Assembly: GCA_002269645.1 (NCBI GenBank)
Contig: NIVC01001445.1
Location: forward strand, 186,001 to 250,000
DNA: 64,000 nt
Reading direction: 5' to 3'
DNA from: Macrostomum lignano
Taxonomy: Eukaryota
The first letter of the stretch is position 1. Each line of letters starts with the position of its first letter. Under the pieces are notes generated by a model. The model saw only the letters and a list, made by a program, of their open reading frames with translations. It searched no databases and was not told the origin of the DNA. Below are positions 3,426 through 49,429 of the stretch, piece after piece. A program made the position numbers and the translations under genes.

Positions 3426-6400
3426 GGTCTGTCTGTCTGTCTGGTCTGTCTGTCTGTCTGTCTGGTCTGTCTGTCTCACCCCAGAATTACCAAACTGCTG
3501 TTGCAGTGAAATCTGCCAAAACTGCCGCAATTCGCCCCAGCGTCGAAGCGATGCGGCAGCTGCTGCTGCGAGCAGATGGGTCTCTGCTGTTGCTGGGACG
3601 CCACAGCGAGATGGCGACCGCGGCTGGCAAAGTGAAGCTGGGCCAAGCAGGGACATAGATGGCAGCGAGAGCGATGCAATTGGTGCAGAATGCTCATACA
3701 AATGACTACGTGGCAATGACAGGTACAGACTACTGAATAAATGTGAAGACAACTTCACAAACAACTTTAAAAGCGCTACAAAATAAAAAGTTGATGATGA
3801 AGATTACTTTGATGAAAGCTTTTAATTTGCGAGTAATATATTTAAGACAATCGTTAGTTCACGTTGAGATTGTAAAAACTGCTTCCACCCCAGTATATTG
3901 CATGAGAGGACCGCTCCTACTCCTCCAGCATATCGGTCAAGAGGATTTGGAATAACTGAATAAGAGCTGAGCATTGAGAGTAATGCAAAATCAGTGCAAA
4001 TCAGCTTCAAGCAACACAATTTAAATGGCAATGCAAAGAGAAACAACACAAAAGTACAGTTAGAAAATGCACAGAAAAATGGGAAAACCGAATTATAAAT
4101 TCTGAGATCAGTGCGCTCACCCTGGCAGGGTCATCCTTGTTGTCCGAGCTGTCGCTGATAAAGTCCCGCTTGCCGTACGGAATGTCGAAGCCGTTAAAGA
4201 CGTCAGCGGCCGGCCGCGGCTCCTCTAGGAAATACCTGCGATCAGAGGTGTCAGCCTGTCAGCGTGTCTAGTAATTACTCGTAAGATTAAAGAGTCAAAT
4301 CACCAACTATTGTATCAATCTATCAATTATTGCATCAGATGATCAATCAATCAATGTATCAATTATTGCATTAGGTGATCAATCAATCAATCTATCAATT
4401 ATTGCATCAGATGATCAATCAATCAATGTATCAATTATTGCATCAGATGATCAATCAATCAATGTATCAATTATTGCATTAGGTGATCAATCAATCAATC
4501 TATCAATTATTGCATCAGATGATCAATCAATCAATCTATCAATTATTGCATCAGATGATCAATCAATCAATGTATCAATTATTGCATTAGGTGATCAATC
4601 AATCAATCTATCAATTATTGCATCAGATTGAAGTGAAACGAAGGCGCCGTTAGCAAGAGGATGGGAGAAATCAGCCGACACGCGCGTGATGCGTGAACAA
4701 GCATCCAGCCCTGGCAGCAACTCCCCAGATGCACAAGATCTGCATGCCTAAAAATAGTCCTGATGATCGGCGAGCAAGAAGCCCAGCCATGCGACCCTCG
4801 CGTGATGCATGCACAACCTCTGACCGACACTGCCTATTGGGCCTCGAAATCCCACTCTCTCCCCCTACTGCTCCTATTCCTCGTTGCTCGCGTACACAGT
4901 GTGCTAGCTTATAAAATATACTGATTGAAGAGGAAAGATCCTCGCCTGAAGTTTGAGAATGTGACTCTAGAGATCACACAGAGAAAGTTACCATCGAGGT
5001 CCATTGTTCGTTGTCTTCCTGAACTGTTGGCAGAAGGAAACGATAATATGGGAAAACCCATATAAATTGTCGTTTCAAGATGATCAATCAATCAATCAAT
5101 CAATTATTGCATCAAATGATCAACCAAACAATCAATCAATTATTGCATTAGGTTATCAATCAATCAATCTATCAATTATTGCATCAGATGATCAATCAAT
5201 CAATGTATCAATTATTGCATTAGGTGATCAATCAATCAATCTATCAATTATTGCATCAGATGATCAATCAATCAATGTATCAATTATTGCATTAGGTGAT
5301 CAATCAATCAATCTATCAATTATTGCATCAGATGATCAATCAATCAATCAATCAATTATTGCATCAAATGATCAACCAACCAATCAATCAATTATTGCAT
5401 CAGGTGATCAACCAACCAATCAATCAATTATTGCATTAGGTGATCAATCAATCAATCAATTATTGCATCAGGTGATCAACCAATCAATCAAGTATTGCAT
5501 CAGGTGATCAACCAATCAATCAATCAATCAATTATTGCATCAGATGATCAATCAATCAATCAATCAATTATTGCATCAGATGATCAATCAATCAATCAAT
5601 CAATTATTGCATCAGATGATCAATCAATCAATCAATCAATTATTGCATCAGATGATCAATCAATCAATCTATCAAGTATTGCATCAGGTGATCAACCAAC
5701 CAATCAATCAATCAATTATTGCATCAGGTGATCAACCAATCAATTAATCAATTATTGCATTAGGTGATCAATCAATCAATCAATTATTGCATTAGGTGAT
5801 CAACCAATCAATCAAGTATTGCATCAGGTGATCAACCAACCAATCAATCAATTATTGCATCAGGTGATCAACCAATCAATGTGTAATTGCATCACATGAT
5901 CAGTCAAACAATGATTGCATCACAGAATCAATCAAATCTATCAATCAGACCCACCTGTCCTCCAGAGCCTCCCTGGCGCTGGGCCGCCGCAGGGGGTCCA
6001 TAGCTAGCAGGCGGCTGAGCAGGCGGAACTCGGGCGAGGTCTCCGACATGCCGAAGCTGCGGCTCATGTGCCGGCCCAGGCTGAAGCGGGCGTACTGCTG
6101 CCCGGTGCCAAAGTTGCGCACAAGGTCGCCGTACTTCGGCAGGTGCGGCAGGTCCCGCCAGTCCTGCTGGCTGGGGAAGCCCATGACGCTGAAGATTCGC
6201 TCCAGCTGGTCGCGGTTGTACGGACTGCTGGTCTTGATGTCCTCCTCCTGCTTGCAGTAGAACAGCGGCTTGTCGGTGATGAGCTCCGCCATGATGCAGC
6301 CGATGGCCCACAGGTCAATGGCCTTCGTGTAGTGCCGTGCCCCCAGCAGCAGCTCCGGCGCCCTGTACCAGAAGGTCACCACCACAGGGTCGATCTCCGT

Positions 6401-7539
6401 TAGTGGAGTCAGCGGCTGGTGAAACAGGCGCGCCAAGCCCAGGTCTGCGATCTTAACGCGGCCGCGCTCCGGCGAGGTGGTACCCATCACCAGGATGTTG
6501 GCCGGCTGGGAGATGCGCGAGGGAGCGGAGATGCAGTGAGGGAGGGAGCGGAGATGCAGTGAGGGAGGGAGCGGATATGCAGGGAGGGAGGGAGCGGAGA
6601 TGCAGTGAGGGAGGGAGGGAGCGGATATGCAGGGAGGGAGGGAATGAGCGGAGATGCAGGGAGGGAGGGAGCGGAGATGCAGTGAGGGAGGGAATGAGCG
6701 GAGATGCAGGGAGGGAGGGAGCGGATATGCAGGGAGGGAGGGAATGAGCGGAGATGCAGGGAGGGAGGGAGCGGAGATGCAGTGAGGGAAGGGCGGAGAT
6801 GCAGTGAGGGAAGGGCGGAGATGCAGTGAGGGAAGGGCGGATATGCAGTGAGGGAAGGGCGGAGATGCAGTGAGGGAAGGGCGGAGATGCAGTGAGGGAA
6901 GGGCGGAGATGCAGTGAGGGAGGGAACGGATATCATCAAGAGGCAAGAAATCGCAGACAGCCTTACCTTCAGGTCCCTGTGCAGCACCCAGTTGGAGTGC
7001 AGGTAGTGGATGCCGCAGAGAATCTGGTGCATGATGCTCTTAGTGAAATTTGGCGGCAGGCTGACCTGGCTGTTGCACTTCTTGGCGCTGGCGTGAAAGT
7101 TGATCATGCGCCACAAGTCGTGCTCGGCGTAGTCGAACAGCAGCCAGATCTGGCGGGTCTCGTGAGCCAGGTAGACCTGCTTCAGCGAGATCACGTTGGG
7201 GTGCTTCAGCTCGCGCAGCAGGGCGATCTCGCGGCACGCGGACATGGAGAGGCCGCTGCCTTCGATCTGCTTGAGCGCGTAGTCGCCAGCGGGTGCGTCG
7301 GCGCAGCTCCTCGGCTTGGTCTTGAACACCTGGCCGTAGCTGCCGCGGCCCACTTTGCGGCCTTCGAATTCAAAGGCGTCTTCGACTCGCTCGCGCCGGG
7401 CGGACAGCTGGCGACGAAAATCCGCGTCCATCCAGGCCCGCGGCTGCTTGCCGGCCTGCGGCTGCTGGGAAGATGAGCATAATGATGAAGAGGAGGCTGG
7501 GACCGCCGGCTTCGCCTGCTGCTGCCGCTGCGAATTCAT
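1576..7539 (-). CDS. CDK8: Cyclin-dependent kinase 8 (Mediator kinase), spliced
   Basis: GT-AG exons 6967-7539, 5955-6505, 4121-4235, 2409-2600 and 1576-1656, plus a tentative phase-0 exon at 3491-3637; phases are compatible. CDK8/19 hallmarks: [43 protein letters not shown]|[51 protein letters not shown], and a Q-rich tail with AKRMRL. The 3' exons are less certain than the kinase exons. Confidence 0.95.
1821..2248. repeat. 20 bp tandem repeat (tagttgctggtcacttctgc), about 21 copies, intronic
   Basis: Near-perfect period of 20. Confidence 0.97.
2960..3476. repeat. (GTCT)n microsatellite, intronic
   Basis: Direct inspection. Confidence 0.97.
4300..5945. repeat. ATCA-rich ~33-37 bp minisatellite (tattgcatcagatgatcaatcaatc..), split by a solo LTR
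   Basis: Arrays at ~4300-4628 and 5078-5945. Confidence 0.9.
4629..5077. mobile_element. Solo LTR (449 bp) in CDK8 intron 2
   Basis: Unique sequence with TGAAG...TTTCA ends, flanked by a 4-bp TSD AGAT (4625-4628 and 5078-5081) that interrupts a minisatellite unit; TATA-like ttataaaa near 4910. Confidence 0.75.
6520..6925. repeat. GA-rich ~21 bp minisatellite (gagggaagggcggagatgcagt) in CDK8 intron 1
   Basis: Direct inspection. Confidence 0.92.
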
Positions 7540-10437: not shown

Positions 10438-13400
10438 CTACTCGCGATATTCCTGAGCGGCGGCCATGGCGGCAGTCTCGAGAATGTCGGACAGCAGCAG
10501 GGAGCCGTCGTCCAGCACAAGGGCGGACTCGGCCGGCTCCGCAGCTACTGAAGAATCGCCGGCGGTTGCCGCGTTGCTGACAATGTCCGACGCCGACGAG
10601 GTGGCAGCGGAGGACGAGGCGGACGACATCTCAGCCTGCCGGTGCCGTCGCAGCGCCCGCCGCTGATCTCGGCGCCGCAGCTGGCGGCAGCGATTTTCGA
10701 ATTGTCGAGCCCGACGTCGGAAATCGGCGGCGGTGGCAGCCGCCGTAGCCGCCGGCGACAGGCCGCCAGACAAGCCGACAGGCGGGGGCGTCGCCCAGCC
10801 GACGGAGACGACCACAACGTCGCTGTCCGCGCTGTCCTCTGAATCTTCACGCGGCGGCGAAGGCGGCTCCCACTGCCGTCGCCTGCGACGACGAACGAAG
10901 CCGGACGTTGAGGGCTTTGGTCGAGTCGACGCGTTGCCGTCGGTCGGCTGATTGTCTTCAACGAAGTCGCCGAAGCCGCTGGTGGACGGCCCAACTGTTT
11001 GACCATCGCCCTCGATACTCAGCATCTCCGGACAGCAGCGGCGCCGAAGCCAGGAGGCCCCGACGCTCGGACTTGACCCGCTGGCCGGTGTCTGCCTCGT
11101 CAGCGGAGTCTTCCTCATCGGCGGCGGCCTCGGACTGATGGGGGTTCGCTCCTCCCACGGCCGCTCGTAGCCGACGATGACGCAGGAGTCGCTGTCGCTG
11201 GCCGGACCGTCGGCATCTGCGGCGGCGTCTTCACCACCGTCGCGATCGCGCTCTTCGCCGTCTGAGCTGCCGGTCTCGGAGCTGTCCGAGTCGCTGACGG
11301 CGGCCGAAGTTGACAGGGACGCCGCCCTCACCGAATCGGAGATCGTGAGCTCGCCGGTGGCGTTTGCCACGCTGGTGGGCACGTTGTCATCGTCGCTGAT
11401 CATCTCCACGATCACCTGCGGCGCATCGGCGGCGGGCCGGCCCGAGTCCGCACTGGCCGCGTCGTTTTGGACCCCCTTGCCGTCGTTTGTTGACTCTGGT
11501 AGCCGCTGGTCCGGCTGCGGATTGCCGTAGGTCCAGGAGTTGGCATCGAAAAAGTGCACCTCGCCGTAGGGCCAGGCAGCGGCGCCCGAATCGTCCAGCA
11601 GGTTGGCCGGCGGTGGGCCGAGAGGCGGCGCCGGGTGCTGCGGCTGCCTGTGCGACCGCCTGCCCGAGACCGCAGCCGGCCAGGGACTCTGCGGGCGCAG
11701 GTGGCGGATGATGCCGCTCAGCAGGTAGTCGTCGGCTTCGTCATCGGCAGCCGGCGCCGGGCCGACAGACTGCGGCGGCAGCGGCGGCGGTGAAGGCGGC
11801 AGAGGGAACTGCTGATGCTGCGGCTGCGGCTGCTGGTACTGGGGCGAGTAGGCGTACAGGTCAAAGAGACCGCGCCAGGACGAAGAGGACTGCCGCTGCT
11901 GCTGCTGCTGCTGAGGCTGCTGTGGATGATGAGGCTGATAGGATACTCTGGGAAGCTGGAACTGTTGGCGATAGTGCTGCTGATGCGGTGGCTGCAGCGT
12001 GACTGTCTGGGGTTGGTACTGCAGAAAGTGGTAGTTGTGATGGTGCTGCGGCGGCAGCTGGGGCTCGGCATCATCCGGCTCCAGCGGGGTCGGTCCGGGC
12101 CGCTGGTTGCGGGCCACCCGGCGGAGCTCCTCGGACAGCGAGTCGGCATCGGCGTCGGTCAGCGGCGCCGGGGGAGGCGACGGCGCTTCGCGCACCGCGT
12201 AGACAACCGCCTGATCGTACTGGGCGATGGTCTCGTGTCGGGACCGGGCGAAGGCCAGCAGCTCGTCGCAGAAGTGGCGCCCGTTGCCGCCGAGATAGGC
12301 GGTCATGATGCGCTGAAACACGGCGGAGTCGATGCGGTGGTGCCGCACCAGGCGCAGGATGTGGTGCACGATGCGCTGCGCCACCATGGGGTCCGGGCAG
12401 CCGGCGCAGGACAGCTCGCGCAGAAGGAACGGCACGAGACGGTGACGCTGGGTCTCGCAGGTGTCGAAGGACGGGGACACGTCGCGGACAATGTCACCGT
12501 CTGGCTGGGTGGCTGAGGCCACCGGGTACATGCGGCGCTGGTACAGCAGGCGGCGGTTCCTGCGAATTTCCTCAGCCGATTCTGGGACGGCGGCGGCCGC
12601 ATCTGATGAGGCAGCGGCGGCTGATCCGGGTTGGTCGCCGCGAACGCGCATCTGGTACCGGAACTGCTGCCACCGGTGGTGCGCGGCCGGCGGGTGCGGA
12701 GGCAGCTGTGGGGGATCCGCAGGAAGCCGACATGGTGGCGGTGGTAGGCGCGTGCCGTCCGCCCGCGTCGCCAGCCTCGGCAGCTCCGGTGAGGTCGATG
12801 CGCATCTCCTCCAGGCCCGCCCGCTGCTGCCGGTGGTGCCTGGGGCCGCCGAACAGGTGCTGGTAGCCGAAGGCCGACCCGGCCCCGAAGTGGGGACCGT
12901 GGTCACCGCCGTCACCGGCTCCGCTGCTGGAACCGCCGCCTGCGCCACCGTTGTTTCTGGCGGCTGCAGCTGCCGCGGCGGCAGCGGCGGCGGCAGCCGG
13001 CGTGAAGGCCATCCGCGAGGCCACGGCGGCCATTGCGGCGGCGGCGGCGGCTGCGGCCGTATTGACGGGCACGGCGTACTCGTCATAGTCGTCGTCGGCT
13101 CGGACATTGTGAATGATGGAGCTGAAGGGCCGCTTGCACTGCGGGCACTCGGGCTTGCGCTTGGACCATTCTAGCAGGCAGGCGAAGCAGTAGCGGTGCA
13201 GGCAGGAGTACGCGTACGAGATGTTCTCCGGCTCCGACAGGCAGATGGCGCACCTGTCCGCCGGAGACAGCGGCCTCGGCGACATCTTGTTGACTGCGGC
13301 AGCGTTGGCGGCGGCTTCGGGATCGAGGCGGAGCAGCTTGCGAGGCGGCGGCGCCCGTTTGCGGTCTTCGCCACCGCCAGCGGGCGGCTGGGCGGCGGCG

Positions 13401-27167: not shown

Positions 27168-30100
27168 TTATCGCAGTGCCTGAGGATACACCAGATTCCT
27201 TGTTCTCCCCCTGGGAGCAAGGATGAAGAGACCAGCTGGAGTTCCAACGCGTGAGCATGCAACATAAAGTTGGCCATGTGAGAAGCAGGGAGACTCCAAG
27301 TTGATTCCGGCCACCTTTAGCGACTGTCCTTGGGCTTTGTTGATGGTCATGGCAAAGCAGACCTTCACTGGGAACTGTACTCGCTTGAATTGAAAAGGCA
27401 GGTCCGATGGAATAATTGGAATTCTTGGAATAAACACAGACTGCCCTTTGCCGGATCCTGTCACGATTGTTGCCTCAATCACATTCGGAAAGAGTTGCTT
27501 GACGATCAGCCTGGTGCCGTTACATAGCTTTGGGGCATTCAAATTGCGCAGTAGCATAATTGGTGCACCCACTTTTAACTGGAGGTTGTGCGATGGCGTT
27601 CCAGGAGGCTCTAGAGAGTTCAAGAACTCAATTGGAAACTCTACAGCATTGTCATCAGTCATTGTTGTGTCAATTGACTTGTAGCTGGTGGTATTGCCAG
27701 GCAGCTCATTGAGCAGCTGAGAGTTGATACCATTAGCTGCGTCATTCCTGGGACACAAAATGGCTCTCTCTGACAGCCAGTTAATGTCAGAAAATTTGTG
27801 CGACAGGTTTAGGTAAACCTTAGCCTTGAGCTCCTGCACAGAAGAGACGATTGTACCGAATGCAGCAATTGGTGACAGCCCATCCTCAGGGCTGACCTCC
27901 AGTTGGCCATCACCAATTCGCAAAAGATTGATAGAAAACCGATGAGCCGTTTCATCGCCATAAACTGCAGCCCTCATGTTGGTTCGCAAGTGCAGCTTCT
28001 CAACTGATGGCCACAGATGCGAAGATTTGAGGCAAGCATTAATTTCATCGGCTGGGGTGCCACGCGGAATTACAGGCAACGTCTGTCTAAAGTCTCCAGA
28101 GAGCAGCAGGGTGACACCACCCATTAGCTGGTTGTTGCTGCGCAGATCCTTCAGCGTCAGGTTAAGTGCTTCAAAAGCCAGTTTGTGGGACATGGTACAC
28201 TCATCCCAAACAATAAGCTTGCAGGCTTGTAATACTCTGGCAGTGCCGCTGTTCTTCTTGATGTTGCACAGGGGATTTTCAACTCTTGACAGATCAAGTG
28301 GCAGTTTTAGTGCTGAGTGAGCAGTGCGACCACCTGGAAGTAGCGTGGCTGCGATTCCAGAGGAGGCGACAGCAATTGCAATATCGCCTCCGTGTCTAAC
28401 CTTTGACAGAAGGAGGTTGATCAGAAAAGTCTTTCCTGTCCCCCCTGGAGCATCCAGGAAAAGTATTCCTCCTAAATTGTCATTCACTCTTCGCAGTACC
28501 TCTTGGTACGCCTCTGCCTGCTCAGGTAGTAGGCGGGGCTCATTTTCCTCAATGAACTGGCGGAGCTGCTCGCGGTCAAAGCTAGTTTCTCGCAGCATCT
28601 CCCTACTCAAATTCTCTTGTTGATGCCTTGCAGGTGTTGGAAGTCCAAAAATATGCAAGGGACGATCCGTCAGTTCTAAAACCTTGTCCTCAATGCGCAG
28701 CAAGGCCTCGTTGAATACTGCCTCTGTGAAGGGCAATTCCTGCTCCTGTAGCAACTGTCGCGCCCGATGGAGAATATCCTCAGCCATATCTTCCTTGAAG
28801 TCTTCCCAAAGCTGAAGAGGATTAGAAAGACCACAGGTGGCAATCAGAATAGCAAAGAGGTCTCGCATTTGGCCTGCTGAGCGCACCACAGATGCTTCTT
28901 GCATTGTGCTTCTCCACTGCGCGTCGTCTTCTAGTAGCCCCATTCGATGACACGCTTCTTGATAAGTTAAGCAGATCTGACCTTCTACCGTCTTGATGTG
29001 CTGGAATGACATCGGGCCAACTACATTGTGCAGTAGCATGCGCAGATAAAAACACTCGCGATGATTTGGGTGCACCGTGTAGACTCTGGACAGTGCATCT
29101 GTTTGCCGCATTCCTGGATGGCCTGGAACTTCAGCGCCTTGAACTCGTCGTTTCCAACTTTTCGAAGAGGCGTTCCACGTGTAGTATGTAGGTACCTGAT
29201 GGTATAGTAAGGTTCTGGCAAAGGCATCTTCGGCACACAACTTAAAAAAGGCAGTGAGTGTAGTGCCCGGTGGTCGCTGACCTCGCTGCATCATGTTTTC
29301 CTCGGTGAAGTACACTCTTTGACCATTCTCCAGGTGCACGCTGAGGTGCACTACGGTTGGGTGACGTTCATGAATTGAGAAACCAAAAATTCGCCACATT
29401 GCTTCATTTGAGCTGATGTACCGTCCACTCTCGTAGCGAGCCACCTCATCGCGCTCAGCTCCTTGCCTTTCAAGGCCAAACACTGCCTGGTCGCTGCCCT
29501 TGTTGACATACTTGCAAATGTACTTGATTGACTTGACTGAGTTGCAGTATTCAACATTGATGTGTGCGTTGAACACTTTCGACAGGAGTGGGCAGTAGGG
29601 AACGACCCACCTGTTGTCCAAATTCACCTCCTCAGTCTGTCCATTTGCACGTAGGATTATTGGAAAGGTGAAGCCACCGTCCTCAGGTGACCTTCTTCGA
29701 TACAACGGGTATCCATCTTCGCCGGTCACTGTCTCGCGCAGCAGAGCCTTGGGAAATTTCTTGGAGCAACGGCCATCTACCATGCAAGGCGAATCTGGCT
29801 TCAGACGGCTGCATGGTCCATGAATCATCTGCCTAGTGACGATTTGGTAGAGCTGAGGGTCCTCGTCTGGATCAGGAATCTCAGCGCGGATAACGCTATC
29901 AATTTGATTCGGCCTAATCCGGTTCCGTAGCCAAATCAGAATATGCGCGTGTGGCAGTCCCCGTTTCTGCCATTCGATCGTGTACATGTCGCATCTAGTA
30001 GGCCCAAAGATAGCTCCTTTGGTAATGAATTCCATCAGTTGTTTCAATTTCAGTTGAAAAACTCGGGCCACTAAGTCGTGTCTATCCTGACTTTGCTGTC

Positions 30101-32093
30101 CCGGCATGAGCTCTGATTTAAGCTCATTCCATGCACTGTTGCAGGTGAAAGTAATAAAGAGGTCGGGGCGACCGTACTTTCTTACGTAAGTCATGGCGTC
30201 TTGTGTACGCTCATGCATGTAGCGTGGGCCACCAGTAAATGAAGAGGGCAAAATAACCATTTGGCCAATTTCATTCGGATTTCTCTCTCCGGCAATAGCG
30301 TCTCGAAGATGAATGTACTCTTCCACTCTAAGCTTCTTTTGGTTAAAGCGGATGAAATTCAGTCTCTCGCACTCAATTTTAGCGTACATGTCCACAGCAA
30401 ACTGCAGCAGTAGCTTTCGACACCGAAGAATACAGTTGAAACTTCCTTCACGAACCATTAGCCGATAAGCGTAGAAGTCCATTGCCGACACTTTCTTTGT
30501 GGCTGATGGATTTCCGGTGCGAATGTCAGTCTGTCGGATATCGAAATGATATCCGTCTTCGCCTTCCCAGAAAATAAGAGGGTACTGCAGAGCATCATAC
30601 CCCCTGTGCATCTCAGATATCCTGGTTAACTGGCTGCTTCGCAGTTCCAAAACAATGTCTCGCTTTTCAAACTGTTGACCAACAATTTGAATGGCAACGT
30701 CGTCAACAACAGGTGCATTGAATCTTCTTTCGTGTTGGCCAGCAGGCGTCTTTGTTGCGTGAATGACAACTCTAAGTTCCTCTACATTTGGAGGTAGCCG
30801 CTCCATAGCAGTTTTGAAATCGCGCACGTACTTGTTATGCGCATGCATAATTTCCTGTAGCTCGAAAACAATGTTAGGTCGCACACCTGGAGCAATCCTA
30901 CATCGGCGCTCAACTTCTTCGTGGCTGTCTCCCATGAAGTAGATCTGCAGGAACTTTGGCTCCTCTCCTTGCAGCGGCAGCAACGATCCCACCAGATGGT
31001 ACACCTGCCCTTGGATTTTAAAAGTAGGCATGAAGCCTGGCTCTTCAACTATTCTTTCAGCTCCGAAAGAAGTGAACTGAAAACAGCTATTGTATCGTCG
31101 AATGTTGGACAGAAAATGATCCGATTCCTCAGAGTTACCCAGCAACAAATGGCGAAGATAGTCTGGTAGATTCTCATTCAGGGGAGTGAGTCTGACTTTT
31201 CCATTACTACAACACATGCCAGGTGTCTCATTTGCCCACCTCAACGCATTGCAATGCTGACATTTCTTCGACATTCTTTCGATAGCAAGCTTTGGGTGGC
31301 TGCTATAAACAAAAGTAGGATCATAATTTAGAGCAAAGCTTAGGGCCCAAGGAGGTGGTCCAATTGCTTGCTCAGATTCGTCATGGGCAACATCTTGCTC
31401 AATAAATCGATAGGCCGCAGTGCGTTCTCTGTGGCGTCTTCGATCGTCTTCACGGCGCACTCCAGCTTCACCCGTCGTTTCATTACGTCGTGCCTCTGCG
31501 GTCTGATCTCTGTTACGTTCCTGCCGCTGCTGAGTCTGAACAGTCGTTTCATTGCGTCGTGCCTCTGCGGTCTGATCTCTGTTACGTTCCTGCCGCTGCT
31601 GAGTCTGAACAGTCGTTTCATTGCGTCGTGCCTCTGCAGTCTGATCTCTGTTACGTTCCTGCCGCTGCTGTGTCTGGACAGTCGTTTCATTGCGTCGTGC
31701 CTCTGCAGTCTGATCTCTGTTACGTTCCTGCCGCTGCTGTGTCTGGACAGTCGTTTCATTGCGTCGTGCCTCGGCTGTTTGTTGTCTTTTTTGTTCACGT
31801 CGTCTTTCTTCCCAATTTGCAGCCCTGAGAGGAAACTGTGTACCTCCAGTTCCATCGGAAGTGCTGGCGCCGGCTGCTGATGTCGATGATCTTGTCGGTG
31901 GTCGAAGGCTTCTTTTCTGGGCTTGTTCTTCTACCGCACTTGCACTCGATCTGGCCTGGGCAGAGCTACCTGTGTTGTCTGCTTCCTCTGTGCCATGCGA
32001 TGTTCCTGCTTCAGCCGCATTGCTTTGCCTTGCAGATCTCAATCGTCTAGCTGCTGCAGTGAAACGACCCAATGCGCTTTTCTTTGGAGGCAT
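27168..32093 (-). CDS. Helitron Rep/helicase (HUH endonuclease + Pif1-family SF1 helicase), 1641 aa, with N-terminal 23-aa STPR-like repeats
   Basis: Rep motifs EWQKRGLPHAHILIW and KYICKYVNKG. Helicase motifs DAPGGTGKTF, IVWDE, GDFRQTLPV, TINKAQGQSL, SHGQLYVACSRV. Zn motif CQHC..CCSNG. 69-bp repeats at ~31480-31770. Confidence 0.97.
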   Translation of the reverse strand: MPPKKSALGRFTAAARRLRSARQSNAAEAGTSHGTEEADNTGSSAQARSSASAVEEQAQKRSLRPPTRSSTSAAGASTSDGTGGTQFPLRAANWEERRREQKRQQTAEARRNETTVQTQQRQERNRDQTAEARRNETTVQTQQRQERNRDQTAEARRNETTVQTQQRQERNRDQTAEARRNETTVQTQQRQERNRDQTAEARRNETTGEAGVRREDDRRRHRERTAAYRFIEQDVAHDESEQAIGPPPWALSFALNYDPTFVYSSHPKLAIERMSKKCQHCNALRWANETPGMCCSNGKVRLTPLNENLPDYLRHLLLGNSEESDHFLSNIRRYNSCFQFTSFGAERIVEEPGFMPTFKIQGQVYHLVGSLLPLQGEEPKFLQIYFMGDSHEEVERRCRIAPGVRPNIVFELQEIMHAHNKYVRDFKTAMERLPPNVEELRVVIHATKTPAGQHERRFNAPVVDDVAIQIVGQQFEKRDIVLELRSSQLTRISEMHRGYDALQYPLIFWEGEDGYHFDIRQTDIRTGNPSATKKVSAMDFYAYRLMVREGSFNCILRCRKLLLQFAVDMYAKIECERLNFIRFNQKKLRVEEYIHLRDAIAGERNPNEIGQMVILPSSFTGGPRYMHERTQDAMTYVRKYGRPDLFITFTCNSAWNELKSELMPGQQSQDRHDLVARVFQLKLKQLMEFITKGAIFGPTRCDMYTIEWQKRGLPHAHILIWLRNRIRPNQIDSVIRAEIPDPDEDPQLYQIVTRQMIHGPCSRLKPDSPCMVDGRCSKKFPKALLRETVTGEDGYPLYRRRSPEDGGFTFPIILRANGQTEEVNLDNRWVVPYCPLLSKVFNAHINVEYCNSVKSIKYICKYVNKGSDQAVFGLERQGAERDEVARYESGRYISSNEAMWRIFGFSIHERHPTVVHLSVHLENGQRVYFTEENMMQRGQRPPGTTLTAFFKLCAEDAFARTLLYHQVPTYYTWNASSKSWKRRVQGAEVPGHPGMRQTDALSRVYTVHPNHRECFYLRMLLHNVVGPMSFQHIKTVEGQICLTYQEACHRMGLLEDDAQWRSTMQEASVVRSAGQMRDLFAILIATCGLSNPLQLWEDFKEDMAEDILHRARQLLQEQELPFTEAVFNEALLRIEDKVLELTDRPLHIFGLPTPARHQQENLSREMLRETSFDREQLRQFIEENEPRLLPEQAEAYQEVLRRVNDNLGGILFLDAPGGTGKTFLINLLLSKVRHGGDIAIAVASSGIAATLLPGGRTAHSALKLPLDLSRVENPLCNIKKNSGTARVLQACKLIVWDECTMSHKLAFEALNLTLKDLRSNNQLMGGVTLLLSGDFRQTLPVIPRGTPADEINACLKSSHLWPSVEKLHLRTNMRAAVYGDETAHRFSINLLRIGDGQLEVSPEDGLSPIAAFGTIVSSVQELKAKVYLNLSHKFSDINWLSERAILCPRNDAANGINSQLLNELPGNTTSYKSIDTTMTDDNAVEFPIEFLNSLEPPGTPSHNLQLKVGAPIMLLRNLNAPKLCNGTRLIVKQLFPNVIEATIVTGSGKGQSVFIPRIPIIPSDLPFQFKRVQFPVKVCFAMTINKAQGQSLKVAGINLESPCFSHGQLYVACSRVGTPAGLFILAPRGRTRNLVYPQALR

Positions 32094-41057: not shown

Positions 41058-43805
41058 AAAGTGTTGAACTGATTCATATACATGTAGAATCTTTCATCGC
41101 ATACAGTGTATAGCGTTTAAGATCACAGCACAAAAATACCTCCTCGCACCTGATAAAGTACGTAGTAGCTATAAGGAATACTTCGGGCCCAAAGTGCCTA
41201 AAAATCAATTTGCAGAGATGGATGAAACTGGACACAATAAAGAGAGCCTCAAAGAAATCTGGGTTATCAAGAATCTTACGTTCGCCCACTGGACGAGTGG
41301 CAACAAGCCCCGTGACCAATGGCTGCCCACCAACTTCTCGCTCCCGCCAGACACACCGCTTCCAGCTGAGGAGGACTTCTGCACCAGCCCAGCGCCGCGC
41401 TATCTGACACACCCTGACCGCTTGACTCGGGTTATTGGGTTGCATATTTTGTTCTGTTATTGCTTTTAATCTGGTCACTGTTAGACCTCTTAGTTGGTCC
41501 AATGAAAAAACTGAAAGGTTCGACTCGACAGCTCTCTTTTTAGCCCATCTCTGGGTCCTCTTTCTTTGTCCCTTCATGCCGCAGCTCTCTTTAGCCGTCG
41601 CCAAATCAGTACGGTACGCGCGTAGTAGAAAAAAAGTCATCAAGAACTTAATTCGCAAGTATTAATATAAGTCAAGCACAAGTACTGCATACATGTATGT
41701 AACAGTCACGCGCTCTTTTTGCACATGCAGTTGTCAATGTTATACACACGGTCTCAACAGGGTAAATAAGAGCTGTGTATTATTCTTATCAACATTATGA
41801 TCTACCAGTGACGATTTTATAAATTCACACTTTCGATTGTACATGCATGCATGTATGCATGATCGTGAATGACGTGAAAGTCCTACACTGCGGGCCATCA
41901 CAGTATTCGTATTAACTATACGCCACTGTAAAACTGTATCGTTAATAAATATATGACAAAGAAGTGAACTATGCCTTCCAAATTTTTTCCAGTAGTCATA
42001 TGCTTGTTATATTTGTAGAATAAAGTCTGCTTTCACGGCAATATGTTCATCAATACGAGCGAGTAAGATAATTTCCTGCGATGTTTAGCATGCTGAATTA
42101 CTCGGCAATGTAGGCGTACACACCAACTTCGGCGATATTGTGCGCGTAATTACTGGATTCAGTTTCAGCAATCACCAGATATTTTATATCCGCACCAAAG
42201 CAATCGTACAGTGAGTACTGAGGAAGAATATCAGCGCTGGTTTTACAACTACTAATAAAGTTTTTTTCAGAATCTAATAGTGTGAATTCTAACAAAGGGA
42301 CAGCAGAAGAGCCAGAGTTATTTCTTTTGCGCCAGATGATAAACCCTCTCACAGTTGCCGCTTTGTCCAGTCTGTACTGCAAATAGGATAATTTATCAGG
42401 TCCTCCAGCTCCATACCGGCTTCCAAAATTGATTGCTCCGTATGTGCTCACATCGTTATCAACAGTTCTTTCACATTTGTCAAAGCTCGCATCCCACTTC
42501 ATGGGCAACTTGGCTGAAAAAAGATAGGATAAGCAAAAAGCCAAACAAAAGTAATAAACAAACTCTGGAAAGCGCAATTACTTACGGTGACATTTCCCCG
42601 TGCCAAAGGTAGTGCCAGAGTCAGGGCACAGGTCACAATGCGCCATTCCAATGCGGTGTCTCAGGGCGAAGTTCAAATCGCAATCGTGGCGTTTTTGGGA
42701 ACCGGATTCGCTAGCGTAGTTGCCAGCGGGACATTTCGAGCACTCGCTGCTGCCTGGGTTAAAAGAGAAAGTGCCTGCTGGGCACAAAGTGCAGTTGGCA
42801 GCGTTTCCAAGTGAGAATGAGCCTCCTTTGCACAGCTCACATGCTGTGGAGCCTGCGTTACTCCAGCTTCCTGCAAGGCACTGGCTGCAGTTTTTTGGAG
42901 TGCATTTGGTCGGCAAAGCTCCCAGCAGGGCACGGGGTGCAAGACGCTGACCCAGCGCGACTGGAATAGCTGCCTTCGAAACACGAAGTGCAATTTATCG
43001 ATCCCGCGCTGGGAGTGAACGAGCCTGCAGGGCATTTGGCGCAAGGGATGCCCTCGACTGGACTGAACTCGCCCCTCTTGCAGTTGTTGGCGCAGCTCAC
43101 TGAGCCCTCAGCACTCGACGTTCCAGCAGGGCAAGCAGTGCAGGATTTCTGACCTGGCTTGTCGGCGAAGAACCCCGCAGAGCACAACTGGCACTGCGTC
43201 TGTCTCTCTGCTTTATTGAACTGTCCGGCTGGACATGGAGTGCACTCCGTTTGACCTCGCTGAGCTGCGAACAAGCCGGCACTGCAGGCCGCACACGAAG
43301 CAGATCCGTTAAACCTGCTCGCTGTTCCAACATGGCACTGCTGGCACTGTACCGATCCTGGCTTGGAAGCGAAATTTCCTGGACTGCAGAGCATGCAATT
43401 CACAGTCGTGTTTGATGCAGAAAAACTTCCAGGAGCGCATGGCAAGCAGTTATGATTTCCCGTTGTGTTCTTAAAAGTATCTGATTGGCAGGGCACACAC
43501 AGATTTTCCTTGCTGTCACTCAGTTGGTAGCCAACTGGACACTCTGTCAAGAACTGCACTGTCCTGACTCTCCTGCCCCCAATCGAATTCCACAATTCAA
43601 CGCGCACATTGCGACACTGGAAGCAGCTGGTGTCATCTTTTGCTAAATTGCAGTCGATGCACTCTTTGTGACAATCCAGGATGAAGTGACCATCAATGAT
43701 CTTGTAGTTATTGTTCAAACACTCCACCTGCGGCATGTCCTTGGTGAGGTGAATATCCATCAGCGACACAGACTTTGAGCCCGCTCCGAACGTGTAGAAA
43801 GACAG

Positions 43806-46198
43806 TGTTGTACTCTATTCTACCTTGCGCCCTGCGCCCTTGTCAATTTGTAATGTACATCAAACTAATGTACATCCACAATACTCAAGTGCACGTTGCT
43901 CTCGGAGCGAACCCTTAGACTTCAAATATATAAATCGCATTCAATGCCCAAATAGGGGCTAACTTCTTATTCAGCAAATTCTACTGGCCTCGCGTCGATT
44001 ACTACATTGGCGTCGCAAGCAAAGCAATGGCTGTCCAACTGCAACTGCCCCCACCCGAGCCATTTGTTGCCAACTGCGAACCTCACACTCTCGCTTCGCG
44101 CTGGGAAGACTGATCATCGCAATTCTTGTGCTTCATCCAGGCCGCAGGAATCAAGGACCCCGCGCAACAGAGGCAAGTTCTACTCTACACTGGCGGCAAA
44201 GAGCTGGCCGAACTGTACAAACAGCTGAGCAACACCGGAGACACCATCGAGTCACTCATCAAGTCATTTAAGGACCACTTCACCAGTCGCAAAAGTATCG
44301 TGTTCTCCAGGTATGAATTCCGAAACTGCGTGCAGCAGCCTGAACAGAGCATTGACAAGTGGGTCAGCCGACTGTACAAGGCAGCAGAAAGCTGCGACTT
44401 CAGGGATCTGCGGGACTCCCTCATCCGCAATCAGATCGTCGCCGGGTGCCACTCAGAACAGCTCAGACAACGGCTGCTCCAGACTGCCAACATCGGCCTC
44501 CAGGAGGTGCTGCAACTTTGCCGGGTCTATGAAGCTGCAAAATACCAATCAGCCGCTATGGAGTCGCATCGCGAAGAGGCTGTCAATCATGTGGGGCGCT
44601 CAAGAGGTGAGCAAATCGACAGGCCAGCCTTCAGACCCAACAATCGGCAAACGTGCTACCGATGCGGCGAATTCGGGCACCGAAGTTGCGATGCGGCCGT
44701 AGGGAAAACCTGCAGCATCTGCAACAAACCTGGACATATTGTCAAGGCCTGCATGTCCAAGCGAAACTCAAGAGACCGCGTGCACATCCTCGATGATCAA
44801 AGGCGGCAGGACCCGGAGAGCTTCAGCAGTCTACCGAGCGACGATGAGGTGTTCTGTCTGGCTACAGACAAACTGCCGCTGCTGACAGTCTCAATCAACG
44901 GCCAGCGGCTGGAAGCTCTCGTCGACAGCGGCGCCAGTTGCAATGTCATCGACATGGCGACCTTTCAGGAGATCAAGACTGGTAAGACGCCACTTCGGCT
45001 GCCAGCAAGGCGGCTTTATCCTTTCGGCTCTCGGTCGCCCCTGGAAACTGCCGGCAGGGCTAAGCTCCTGGTCAGCGTCGGCGGCTCGAAGGACATGGTC
45101 GACTTTACAGTGGTGCGCAACCAGGGCGTCACCATCCTGGGGAGGGCGACGAGTGAGAAATTCGGCGTATTGCGAGTTGGGCCAAAAAGAAAGACGCACA
45201 TCGGCAGAATTGGCAGCGCTGGCGGAATCGAAGCAGCTGAACTTGAGTGTCCGGAGAGCTACTCCGCGAATCTTCCAACTGACCAACTCGGTCAAGCGTT
45301 CAACTACCACCGAACAGAAGTTTTAACAGCCAAACCGTCGCTATCCACGCTACCGAAGTCGGCATGGTCGATCATCAGTGTCGATTTTATCGGGCCCGTC
45401 AACGGTCGGCATTTCCTTTTGATCGTGGACCAGCACTCGCGCTACCCCATCATCGTAGCAATGAAGTCGATTACAGCTGTAGGCACGATCAATCAGCTGA
45501 AACAGATCTTCGCTATGTTCGGTATTCCGAAGCAAATCATGACCGGCAGCGGTCGGCCATTCTCTTCGGAAGCATTCATCCAATTCGTCACCAGTCACCG
45601 GATCGGTCACGACCGCATCAAGATGCTGCATCCAGAGGCCCAACGCATCACAGAGGACATGAAGCGGCTCCTAAACAATCTGCTCCGCTCCTCCAGCGCC
45701 CAAGGAGCCGCCTGGAGTGTTGCGCTGCGAGACTGGCTCGCCGCGTACCGCAGGACCCCAAACATCGACACGGGAGCCGCGCCAGCTGATCTGCTGTTCA
45801 GGAGACCGGTCCATCACTGCGGCCCAGAGACTGGCTAACCAGCGGAGGCCGAGGCTACTATCGCCGATCGTACGCTGTGTTCATTCAACATAGGACAAGT
45901 CACGAGCTTTAATTATTTAACTCATGCGAATACGAGCCTATTTTAAGTGCACTTTCCTTCTTTTTAATTTCCTTCAAAAATTCGTGTAGGGGAAACATGT
46001 TGTACTCTATTCTACCTTGCGCCCTGCGCCCTTGTCAATTTGTAATGTACATCAAACTAATGTACATCCACAATACTCAAGTGCACGTTGCTCTCGGAGC
46101 GAACTCTTAGACTTCAAATATATAAATCGTATTCAATGCCCAAATAGGGGCTAACTTCTTATTCAGCAAATTCTACTGGCCTCGCGTCGATTACTACA
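43806..46198 (+). mobile_element. Young non-autonomous Ty3/Gypsy LTR element (2.4 kb) lacking RT and RNase H
   Basis: 201-bp TG..CA LTRs at 43806-44006 and 45998-46198, differing at two C/T positions. PBS-like TGGCGTCGCAAGC at 44008; purine tract before the 3' LTR. ACAG on both flanks (43802-43805; 46196-46199, overlapping the LTR end). Confidence 0.93.
44027..45838 (+). CDS. Gag (two CCHC knuckles)-aspartic protease-degenerate integrase fusion, with one premature TGA at 44111
   Basis: ATG at 44027 is in frame with ORF 44126-45838 (RWED*SSQF). Knuckles CYRCGEFGH and CSICNKPGHIVKAC; protease ALVDSGASCNVI; integrase WSIISVDFIGP..VDQHSRYP..FGIPKQIMTGSG (SDNG changed to TGSG). No YxDD motif. Confidence 0.88.
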
Positions 46199-48140
46199 GG
46201 CGGCTGTACTGGCTGTCCGGTCGGAACTTGTACCCAGAGTAGACAGTGCCGATCTCGCTGTTCGAGCCCGCCTTACCGAACTGCATTAGAACTGATCCAT
46301 TGGCCTGATTCACACACAAGAAGTAGGACTGGTACAGGTTCTTGTCTCCAAGTGTCCCCATTCCCTTCTGATAGTCTCTCTTTTGCGGTTTCATTGCTTT
46401 GTAGAATGTCATTCCCGCTAGAACTGTGAGACTCTTGATTACGTTCATTTCTTGTGCTCCTGTACTGACTGTCGGACTTTGCACTGCTCGATTTTGTCGT
46501 AGTCTTTTTTCTTTCCACCAAAACCCAAAAAGCCCGTCCGAGTGGTTTTCTGAGAATATTTTGACTGCAGCGATGAAAACATTGACTGGAACTCGGTCCC
46601 AGCCAGACTGGCAAACTCTTCCGACGACGCAAACTTTTTTGTCTTTGCTCTCTTTGTGATTTTTAGCTGACCGCCGAACTTTCCAGACCGGATAAAATGC
46701 GTGCCCCAGCGTAGCAGAAAGTCTTGAAATTTGCTGGCAGCGCCCACTGAAGAGTATGACTCTGGAAGACTCATGTAGTCTCTGAGCGCAGCGAAGTTGA
46801 TGTCATTAGGCTTCACATCATCCAGTGAAATTTTGTACATGATTACACTCACATACATGATGGCAAAGAAATCGTCAGTAGAACCTTGTTTTCTTGCAGC
46901 CTGGGAATACTGTGAATTTATTGAGGCTGATTGACTGCTAGTGGTTGATGACGAGCTGCCAGAGCTTTCTCCTGACCCAGATGAAAGCGAGCCACCCACC
47001 GCGCCACCAAGCGTCGCTCCCAAGGCCGCTCCCGCAGGCCCACCCGCTATGGCTCCAATAGCACCAACGACGATTCCACCTATCGCACCGAGATTGAACC
47101 CAGACGCCTCAGAAGTGCTGTGCTGGCGAGCCTCGCTCAAGAACAAATTTCGCTGCTCTGATAGACCGGCTTTGTCCCTGATGTAGCTCATGTACTCGTC
47201 CGCAGACCGGAACGACTTGGTCTCAGCTGTGGTCTCGAAGATGCCAAACACGTTCATCGTGTCGGGCACGTCCTTGTCCAGGAAGGTGGCCATGCTGGAG
47301 CAGTAGCGCTGCACCAGACTGGCTTTGAGGCTCGCGATCTTGTAGAATCCTCGTCCGTCGAAGCCGACGCCGATGTACGCGGCAGCGTCCAGGAGCTTCA
47401 TGCAGATTGTATTGCCCTTGCCAGGAACCTTGCTGGAGTAGCACTTGCTAGTCTTGGGATATGATGCACCTGTGTACCCATTCATCAACACCGGACCAAC
47501 TCCCATTGGATAGACATAGACGGGCATCTTGTCTTTTGCCTCTTCCTTCTTTTTGTCAGGCTCACCCACGGTCTCCGTCATCACCCAACCCGAAGGCTGT
47601 TAGTTGGAGAATCCGTTGAAGCCCTGCTCGGCCTGCAGACTGATGGATCTCGTGCCTGCTTTCTGCGTCTTTGCCGAGCGCTCTTTCAGCATGTTCTTTA
47701 GAATTTCCTTGGTGATGAGTGGGGTGGCTTGACCGTCAGTTGATTGCGTGAGATCATCCAGCAAGTCCTTGGTCTTCTTGTCTGAGTTGCTGATTGCGTT
47801 TGCAATCGCGTCTACAGCCGGACCGTACTGCTCCAGGGCGTTGGCATCGACAGTCTTGCTGGTGTCTTTCTCTGCAGCTTCAACTTGAAATCCAAGCAAT
47901 GCAATTGCGATCACTGCAGCCAGACAGGCGTGAATTTTCGAAGCCAGCAATTTGCTTCAGACGGTAGTAAAACTGGAATGGTTTTGACGCTTCTTGAATC
48001 AGTTCGAGTCGGTTCTGGGGGGGGGGGGGGTTGATAGAAAATATGAAAGTGTGCATTATCCACTAATATATTAAATTTTTGAAGTGCTAAAATACGCTCG
48101 TATTTGAACAATTAACTGTGAGGTGCTTAGAAAGATAGAG

Positions 48141-48415
48141 GAAGCCGATGGAAGGAGAGCGATGGGGAGGAGAGGGATGGGGAGGAGAGGGATGGGGAGG
48201 AGAGGGATGGGGAGGAGAGGGATGGGGAGGAGAGGGATGGGGAGGAGAGGGATGGGGAGGAGAGGGATGGGGAGGAGAGGGATGGGGAGGAGAGGGATGG
48301 GGAGGAGAGGGATGGGGAGGAGAGGGATGGGGAGGAGAGGGATGGGGAGGAGAGGGATGGGGAGGAGAGGGATGGGGAGGAGAGGGATGGGGAGGAGAGG
48401 GATGGGGAGGAGAGG
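48141..48415. repeat. 15 bp perfect minisatellite (gatggggaggagagg)
   Basis: About 18 copies. Confidence 0.97.
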
Positions 48416-49429
48416 GAGAAAAATAAATGCCCGTGTGCCAGTCAGTCGCTAGGTGAGCAATGCTACCAGCTGCTTTTGCACGCGTCGACACAAAACCGAC
48501 CTCATTCGAATTAAAGAATAAGAAATGATTTAAATTTGCTTAAATTCTGGAACTACCACGCCAGGAAACTATATGTAGGTGTTATTTAAAATTCAAAAAT
48601 CAATATATAATCGTTGACATCCATAGCCAATACTTAGCGATTTGAGTGCAGCCAGGATTCAATACGGCTCAGCCTGAGAAGGAAAAGGGAGATCAGAATA
48701 AGAGTGAGGCGGACACTTCAAATACAATCTTACTGAGTTATTTAAACAGAATGAAAATAGTAGCAGGGTATTGCTTAGAGTCATTAAGATTCAAATGCCT
48801 CTGAAGAAAAGCATCTGAATAATATGCTAAAGCAGGAGCGTCACAGAGCACAGAGGAAGCTATGTGGGTTTAGCACAACACATAGCTCTGCACAGCCCAT
48901 CTCGAGTGCAAGTGCAGCAAAATGAGAGCCAAAGCAGAACAGAAGCCTTCCACCACAGACAAATCAGTGACACCACAACAGGTTCTCATTGAGTTCTCAA
49001 CTCTGGAGCAGAGTCGGCAAACTCCGGCTTGCGGGCCACACGCGGAACTGGAAGCGTCTGTATCAGGCCCCTCGGGTCCTTTGAAATTTCACGATAGCAA
49101 TCCTTCCCCTCGAGATTTGTGTCTCAGCTCTCTATTTTCTGTCTTCTCTCTCCTCCCTCCTCTCTTCTCTCCTCCTCTCTTTTCTCTCCTCTCTCCCCTC
49201 TGCCTATCTCACCTCTCACTCATTTTTCATCTCCTCTTTCCTCCCTTATCACCCTTCCCTTTCTCCTTTCTCCTCTCTTTTTTCCTTTTATTTTCTACTT
49301 TTACTCTCATCCAATTTAAGGGTTTGCTTTTCCAATATCATAAATAATGCCTACGAACTGCGAAGGTGACTATGAGTACTCGTATAATGAACAAAATTAA
49401 TTTCCTGTAAGTGTTTGTGCAGTCTTAAA

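Follow-up and report, generated by a model that had tools for sequence, protein, structure and literature searches.

A disabled locus in Macrostomum lignano as the probable pseudogene of an apparently undescribed family of lectin-headed MACPF proteins

In animal immunity, killing by pore formation is chiefly the work of MACPF proteins. To our knowledge, their targeting is understood for only a few of them, i.e. complement, perforin, MPEG1 and the snail toxin PV2. Apextrin/ApeC proteins and MPEG1 are linked to immunity in invertebrates, and a preprint describes apple-snail perivitellin-2 (PV2) as a toxin composed of a MACPF subunit and a lectin (bioRxiv 10.1101/2019.12.23.880021); on that description, the joining of a MACPF chain to a lectin chain means that a logic of recognition plus attack works in nature. 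Here we describe a locus at 42098-47950 on the minus strand of a 64,000-nucleotide window (the whole stretch of DNA that was analysed, from Macrostomum lignano contig NIVC01001445.1, assembly GCA_002269645.1) that reads, in order, as a signal-peptide-like start, a MACPF domain, a stalk of cysteine units, a phase-1 intron and a terminal head. We consider it likely that this locus is a pseudogene of an undescribed family of lectin-guided MACPF effectors, in whose members pore formation and immune function are putative.

The elements that an earlier note on this DNA had listed are all present on the minus strand between these positions, far beyond what chance would produce. Lesions were mapped from piecewise alignments between intact relatives and the window; the resulting pieces, together with the lesions and the long terminal repeat (LTR) retrotransposon that interrupt them, are given below in the direction of reading, with positions in the relatives P0158 and P0007 (the latter being the closest relative).

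47600..47950, minus strand: N-terminal piece, 116 codons, with the signal-peptide-like start; aligned to paralog residues 47-125
47600..47602, minus strand: in-frame TAA inside the conserved block GFNGFSN(stop)QPSGW; a sense codon in all relatives, no splice signals
46445-47584, minus strand: MACPF piece, 379 codons; Pfam MACPF E=1e-8, 36 bits against a cut-off of 21.5
46505..47584, minus strand: first two thirds of the MACPF domain, with signature WGTHFIRSGKFGG; tblastn to P0158 E=8e-121
46416..46505, minus strand: remnant of the polar second helical cluster (TMH2), in another frame; P0007 residues 491-532 align, E=3e-4
46415..46425, minus strand: deletion junction; the paralog coordinate jumps from ~518-520 to 886 across adjacent window bases
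46199..46415, minus strand: remnant of the beta-sandwich that ends the middle module, 73 codons; 63% identical to P0158 886-958, E=9e-24
43806..46198, plus strand: LTR retrotransposon, ~2.4 kb, with direct LTRs, primer-binding site, purine tract and a gag/pol open reading frame (ORF)
42858..43805, minus strand: end of the beta-sandwich, Cys-rich transition (CHKECIDCN...) and nine stalk units; 43% identical to P0158 958-1266
42905..42915, minus strand: second frameshift, within one repeat unit (...CPAGSFADQ / TKCTPKNC...)
42586..42916, minus strand: four further stalk units and a divergent last unit, up to the splice donor; Pfam Ephrin_rec_like E=1.4e-12
42514..42585, minus strand: the sole intron found, 72 nt, GTAAGT...TTTCAG, phase 1, between stalk and head
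42098..42513, minus strand: C-terminal head, 137 codons and TAA (42098-42100); probably a divergent F-type-lectin-like beta-sandwich without the paired-Cys stretch

The encoded protein is a member of the MACPF superfamily (PF01823), as had been claimed before from the letters alone: besides the Pfam match listed above, the signature RWGTHFIRSGKFGG at 46670-46708 reads WGTHF...GG, in agreement with the (Y/W)-G-T-H-(F/Y)-x6-G-G pattern, and the fold, a bent central beta-sheet with two helical clusters, is tentatively supported on a predicted model of an intact paralog, described below. The match covers positions 2-149 of the 214 of the Pfam profile only, and the domain is thus incomplete here; the piece is 54% identical to intact M. 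lignano paralogs over 472 residues (tblastn, E=8e-121). Ahead of it, the N-terminal piece opens with a hydrophobic core, ACLAAVIAIALLGF, followed by VEA/AE (Kyte-Doolittle values up to 3.1), so that the signal peptide proposed earlier stands as a hydrophobic, signal-peptide-like start, albeit one that lacks an ATG: the frame begins with TTG, two codons past a TGA. The N-terminal region beyond this start is helical in the paralog model. In the flatworm members the first MACPF helical cluster contains a G/A/S-rich, glycine-zipper-like stretch (...GAIGGIVVGAIGAIAGGPAGAALGATLGGAVGG...), at ~46940-47110 of the minus strand here and at residues 290-340 of P0158.

Downstream of the middle module the stalk totals 13 C-x2-C-x2-G-x-[FYWA] units with a spacing of mostly 17 residues (regular-expression count over the pieces 43769-42858 and 42916-42578), and Pfam Ephrin_rec_like (GCC2_GCC3, PF07699) matches the first of these pieces in six stretches with E=4e-29, in accord with the furin/GCC2-GCC3 cysteine repeats noted earlier. 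The single 72-nt intron between stalk and head likewise bears out the description of the gene as almost intron-free, which is explained by a single long exon extending up to the stalk; the genome average in M. lignano is about five introns per gene. At the locus of an intact flatworm paralog (L003) residues 1-1506 are encoded without interruption in one exon of ~4.5 kb, and the two kringles in which this protein terminates lie on one exon each, preceded by phase-1 introns (97 or 1003 nt); the intron of the window copy lies at exactly the same stalk/head boundary. Heads on separate phase-1 exons are the classical arrangement by which domains become exchangeable through exon shuffling. A UniProt model from M. 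lignano (P0006, 172 amino acids) represents only the 3' end of the window locus (42098-42830, minus strand) and uses the identical H/P splice junction for this intron. It also splices out 45 codons (135 nt, GTGAGA...CCTCAG), homologous to coding sequence of P0007, and this second gap is therefore probably a prediction artefact or the result of cryptic splicing.

The identity of the head required a longer chain of comparisons, since Pfam gave no match to it, even at E<=10. Identity to the P0007 head is 21%; that head itself reaches the F5_F8_type_C_2 profile with E=0.024 and 15.7 bits, below the cut-off of 27.8, and finds the bona fide F-lectin-like domain of the amphioxus protein P0022 with E=3e-5 (phmmer, 161-sequence set). 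A profile built from the two flatworm heads aligned to the F5_F8_type_C_2 domain of P0022 in hhalign with a probability of 70% and E=4e-5, and its sole match in the PDB below E=10 was a weak one, 1k12_A (annotated 'lectin', E=0.81), which we take to be eel fucolectin (eel agglutinin). The window head aligns with F-lectin-like heads at conserved Cys positions and at the terminal AEV.VY strand. Telling against a lectin assignment, however, is the lack in the window head of the paired-Cys stretch that the heads of P0007 and amphioxus have in common (three-sequence alignment): it reads RKRNNSGSS where P0022 has NRQECCQDR and P0007 has KRTDCCPDQ, and the sugar-binding motif is therefore absent. The fucose-binding triad, which we presume to be His ... 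Arg-x-Asp-Cys-Cys-x-x-Arg, has its His and Arg positions missing here. An AlphaFold model of the head from the single sequence reached a predicted local distance difference test score (pLDDT) of 49.7, returned nothing below E=0.1 in Foldseek and was discarded, and a word-indexed homologue search with the head retrieved only P0006, i.e. the same locus, with no other protein sharing 5-residue words. Of the lectin-like beta-sandwich cap proposed earlier there thus remains weak profile evidence, but neither a Pfam match nor a close structure: for this copy a fucolectin/discoidin-like cap is plausible and its link to lectins weak. In other family members discoidin/F-lectin-like heads are well established.

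The window copy is non-functional and cannot act in the manner proposed below for intact members, because its start codon has been lost and it carries a premature stop, two frameshifts, a loss of ~365 codons and an LTR insert. The first frameshift falls in an A-run at ~46505. The deleted ~365 codons are present in all relatives (P0158 ~520-885, P0007 ~520-889) and comprise the end of the MACPF domain and most of the conserved middle module; the rest of the window does not contain them, and the paralog is intron-free at this point. The 'unknown domain' of the earlier note is real, but no more than ~75 residues survive here, from the end of a conserved module of ~450 amino acids, the rest having been deleted. 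That note was also right to call the copy disabled, although it understated the damage, having missed both the internal deletion and the identity of the ~2.4-kb interruption as an LTR element.

It might instead be argued that the gene is intact and encodes a working protein, its stops, shifts and 2.4-kb insert being introns or assembly errors. The assembly (Mlig_3_7) was built from PacBio reads with Canu and polished with Pilon, both frameshifts lie within short A-runs, and introns do exist in this gene family. Short A-runs in such an assembly mean that the two single-base frameshifts could be assembly errors, which counts against the evidence for decay; an error is much less likely for the TAA, the deletion and the insertion. 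Moreover, a single unbroken exon of the paralog covers residues 1-1506, the TAA falls within a conserved block and has no splice signals, the LTR element splits a codon in a conserved beta-strand region, ~365 conserved codons are missing throughout the window, and there is no ATG. The notion of an intact gene is accordingly already largely refuted, and we find it barely credible. An intron as the explanation for the TAA and the gap was ruled out by the paralog alignment and by the paralog's uninterrupted exon. As M. lignano trans-splices many mRNAs, with a leader that we take to end in AUG, provision of the start codon by trans-splicing was also considered, and was rejected since the sole nearby upstream AG acceptor (47957-47956) puts the leader AUG out of frame with the signal peptide. 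The window locus is of interest in its own right only in that it illustrates gene decay and the activity of LTR elements in a genome that is recently polyploid and rich in repeats, with ~21% LTR retrotransposons and much recent duplication.

The LTR element is a young copy, as its near-identical LTRs (43806-44006 and 45998-46198, with TG...CA ends) differ by 2 mismatches in 201 nt. The 5' LTR is followed by a primer-binding site, TTGGCG... (TGG-starting), and the 3' LTR preceded by a purine tract, GGGGAAACA; between them a single 570-amino-acid ORF (44126-45838) fuses a gag zf-CCHC domain, an aspartic protease and an integrase (Pfam). Neither reverse transcriptase nor RNase H was found in the element by Pfam, so that it is non-autonomous and must have been mobilised in trans. 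Its insertion splits the codon for the Leu matching P0158 residue 958, the paralog alignment is contiguous across the insert, and the insert plus 4 bases is a multiple of three, consistent with simple insertion. The target-site duplication is ambiguous, which counts against the reading: a clean one of 4-6 bp was not found, the flanks being GACAG and GGCGG, and ACAG can be read as a duplication only when the final ACA of the 3' LTR is assigned to the target. To the left of the 5' LTR, 15 bases look like the purine tract of the element itself (CGTGTAG followed by purines). At the other end of the locus, a 15-nt microsatellite of ~25 copies at 48090-48477 lies directly upstream of the pseudogene start and reads PSPPH or GEGWG depending on frame.

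Intact relatives were sought by an exhaustive HMMER scan of 1.84 billion representative sequences, which found 171, of which 29 have E below 1e-30 and many are 1100-1900 amino acids long. The intact paralogs whose existence the earlier note had surmised occur in the same genome, as PAA73168.1 / Mlig027585g1 (1685 amino acids), PAA49111.1 (1281 amino acids) and one UniProt model. The closest relative, P0007 (64% identity, 1523 amino acids), is encoded on a contig of 4934 nt, apparently a transcript, from Sequence Read Archive run SRR30276812. Further members come from amphioxus (in many separate 50%-identity clusters), the hemichordate Glandiceps, the brachiopod Lingula, the annelid Owenia, the chiton Liolophura, stony corals and Nematostella, so that the taxonomic survey suggested earlier now spans from Nematostella and corals to amphioxus. 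A first, word-indexed search with the whole MACPF piece had returned 5 matches only and missed the same-genome paralogs, presumably because the G/A/S low-complexity stretch filled the list of 8000 candidates. One fragment of the family (P0079, 405 amino acids, on a 1250-bp contig), 55% identical to the flatworm core, is labelled 'MAG: Kangiellaceae bacterium' in NCBI; it is probably animal DNA mis-binned into a bacterial metagenome-assembled genome, the family being otherwise confined to animals. That this architecture is not a named family, as suggested before, agrees with both the databases and the literature: all named relatives are labelled 'uncharacterized', 'hypothetical', 'predicted' or 'MACPF domain-containing', and we found no paper combining MACPF with Ephrin_rec_like and none naming the flatworm gene. 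Nor did we find described in the literature the middle module with its jelly roll, the swapping of heads on phase-1 exons or the spread from cnidarians to chordates. Members are therefore already in databases as unnamed predictions, and the family-level picture was not found described.

In intact members the build order is a signal peptide, an N-terminal region of ~100 amino acids (helical in the model), MACPF, the ~450-amino-acid module, often a stalk, and one or more heads. A MACPF match was obtained in all 30 relatives scanned with Pfam, and the G, T, H, F and G of the signature, GG included, are invariant across them. Over the 21 long members, conservation extends through P0158 residues 160-1040, where the commonest residue in each column is found in 45-65% of sequences, with the exception of the low-complexity helical-cluster stretches at ~281-360 and 481-520; beyond residue 1040 everything is variable. 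For the middle module Pfam returned nothing, even at E<=10. An AlphaFold2 model of the flatworm paralog (residues 1-1059, from a 30-sequence alignment) gave an overall pLDDT of 59, with residues 570-1010 mostly at 70-90 and an all-beta region at 850-1000. Foldseek against the PDB placed perforin (3nsj) first with E=2.6e-7, and also listed GNIP1Aa, C9, Mp2Ba1 and MPEG-1, the MACPF matches ranging from E=2.6e-7 to 5e-4; in the same search dozens of galectins, laminin-G/LNS domains, levanase, SPRY, VIP36 and L-type lectins appeared with target-relative TM-scores of 0.55-0.61 over ~148 columns. The model therefore suggests that the middle module ends in a concanavalin-A/galectin-like jelly roll, i.e. 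a beta-sandwich. In a comparison of the family profile with PDB sequences, the MACPF part matched C8alpha (E=4e-5), C9 and perforin, and the Cys repeats matched the Chlamydomonas mastigoneme protein Mst1 (8tx1, E=2.4e-9).

The variable part beyond the core carries a wide range of heads, the majority being lectin or pattern-recognition domains. The numbers of members with each Pfam match, in a census of 30 members, are as follows.

MACPF: 30
Ephrin_rec_like: 9
F5/8 type C (discoidin): 5
F5_F8_type_C_2 (F-lectin-like): 5
SRCR: 4
C-type lectin: 3
Laminin_G_3: 3
EGF: 3
Pentraxin: 2
SUEL lectin, tectonin, kringle, D8C, HYR and Sushi: 1 each

Among the four coral members scanned no Ephrin_rec_like stalk was detected, and the core runs straight into a laminin-G (LamG)/pentraxin-like or D8C head; the MACPF match in the coral members is much shorter, at ~170-185 residues against ~230. 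The earlier idea of a lectin targeting arm would fit the family as a whole, in which predicted discoidin, F-lectin-like, C-type lectin, SUEL, tectonin and pentraxin/LamG heads occur.

Taken together, these features suggest that the window copy once belonged to a family, ancient and unnamed, of large, perforin-like proteins found in marine invertebrates, the signal-peptide-like start pointing to secretion. In intact members the head would bind a glycan or a surface pattern on a target cell, the disulfide stalk would act as a spacer or arm that keeps the head away from the core, and the MACPF core would oligomerise and insert into the target membrane, the protein serving as a humoral defence effector or possibly as a toxin. 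Several points weigh against this scheme. For all members we infer, rather than observe, pore formation, glycan binding, secretion and an immune role, and several MACPF proteins, i.e. astrotactins, BRINPs and Torso-like, are not known to form pores. Confidence in the MACPF part of the paralog model is low, with pLDDT at 30-60 across much of residues 130-520, the whole-chain TM-scores of the MACPF matches in Foldseek are low, at 0.18-0.20, and, as Foldseek reported no query ranges, the jelly roll has been placed at residues 850-1000 from secondary structure.

One alternative is that the MACPF domain is non-lytic and that intact members are secreted adhesion, matrix or signalling proteins like astrotactins, BRINPs and Torso-like, whose lectin, kringle and SRCR heads would serve binding to the extracellular matrix or between cells. 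Such a role would suit the kringle, EGF, Sushi, HYR and D8C heads, which are typical of matrix and adhesion proteins, and would be compatible with the low-confidence modelling of the MACPF part and with helical-cluster regions that are poorly conserved, of low complexity and without an obvious alternating amphipathic pattern (in flatworms, TMH1 is G/A/S-rich and TMH2 S/Q/T-rich). It is, however, difficult to reconcile with the invariance of the MACPF signature and GG in 30 members, and among solved structures the nearest in sequence and fold are pore formers (C8alpha, C9, perforin and GNIP1Aa); in addition, the many amphioxus clusters and the lectin and SRCR heads fit the pattern generally known from expanded innate-immune families. 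We consider a non-lytic role rather unlikely.

If membrane attack is retained, its purpose may differ. The family is present in cnidarians, and sea-anemone MACPF toxins act in offence and defence, so that intact members could be toxins for prey killing or predator deterrence in place of antimicrobial immune effectors; the combination of lectin and MACPF also follows the logic of the snail toxin PV2 (bioRxiv 10.1101/2019.12.23.880021). Members are found, however, in amphioxus, Lingula and Owenia, which are generally known as filter or deposit feeders and have no known venom, and the proteins are very large for toxins. A toxin role is on balance improbable, and humoral defence remains the preferred reading of the family. 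On this preferred reading we tentatively put forward a further proposal, possible though doubtful, that these are single-chain 'lectin-headed perforins' of cnidarians and bilaterians, which would unite pattern recognition, through exchangeable lectin, SRCR or kringle heads on phase-1 exons, and membrane attack in one secreted protein as a one-molecule counterpart of complement's logic of recognition plus membrane attack complex, the middle module with its jelly roll being a new MACPF accessory for membrane docking or oligomerisation.

The family would offer a natural series in which the same MACPF core is combined with a dozen recognition heads; it spans eight phyla and has expanded in amphioxus, a basal chordate. 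Should its members form pores, this series would permit a direct test of how the targeting domain sets MACPF specificity, and would provide a new conserved accessory module for structural study and a candidate ancient humoral effector outside complement. As M. lignano is amenable to transgenesis and RNA interference (PMC5730564), an intact paralog can be tested in vivo.

Four other features of the window were recorded. A Helitron at 27168-32093 (minus strand) has an apparently intact ORF of 1641 amino acids with Rep (Helitron_like_N) and PIF1 helicase domains, and is an annotated gene in the public assembly; the ORF agrees at every residue with contig NIVC01001445.1 of GCA_002269645.1, and publications link this accession and the NIVC prefix to the Mlig_3_7 assembly of M. 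lignano, a free-living marine flatworm. A protein kinase domain at 5945-7539 (minus strand) is divided between two overlapping ORFs, covering Pkinase profile positions 4-125 and 126-263, which implies a frameshift or a short intron. At 52880-57618 (plus strand) a retroelement has an ORF of 813 amino acids with reverse transcriptase and RNase H, preceded by three ORFs without a Pfam match, and at 10438-13107 (minus strand) an ATG-initiated ORF of 889 amino acids, rich in Pro, Gln, Ser and Ala and likewise without a Pfam match, lies in a block of 62% GC.

In comparison with known systems, the family is neither a complement component nor an apextrin and apparently not MPEG1, as none of the accessory domains that define these was found by Pfam. 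With perforin and C8alpha/C9, which are its best sequence and fold matches in the PDB, it has in common the (Y/W)GTH(F/Y)...GG signature and an arrangement in which accessory domains lie C-terminal to MACPF in a secreted protein (secretion being putative for the family). The likeness is nevertheless limited to the MACPF core: the family lacks TSP1, LDLa and C2 domains, the TSP1 and LDL-receptor class A hallmarks of C6-C9 having no Pfam match in the window pieces or in the 30 relatives, and has instead the ~450-amino-acid module with its predicted ConA-like jelly roll, a GCC2_GCC3 stalk and lectin-type heads. Apextrin/ApeC proteins and MPEG1 resemble it as invertebrate proteins in which MACPF is followed by a C-terminal recognition or membrane-binding domain; no ApeC domain was matched by Pfam in the window pieces or the 30 relatives, no MPEG1-type domain was reported by Pfam in the 30 members (in MPEG1 itself a P2 domain, a transmembrane helix and a short cytosolic tail follow MACPF), and MPEG-1 ranked only 50th in Foldseek. 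The C-x2-C-x2-G-x-[FY] disulfide unit of the stalk occurs also in SCUBE, in ELAPOR and in the Chlamydomonas protein Mst1, whose repeats build a rigid rod, but these proteins, unlike the family, have no MACPF domain. Several members carry bona fide F5_F8_type_C or F5_F8_type_C_2 heads, as in F-type lectins and discoidin, whereas the window head, which has neither a Pfam match nor the paired-Cys stretch, resembles them only weakly in hhalign and PDB comparisons. Compared by description, PV2 resembles the family in coupling a lectin part for targeting to a MACPF part for attack, and one family member carries a tectonin domain; PV2, however, consists of two chains from two genes, a MACPF and a tachylectin linked by disulfide, whereas the family places both parts in one polypeptide with a long stalk.

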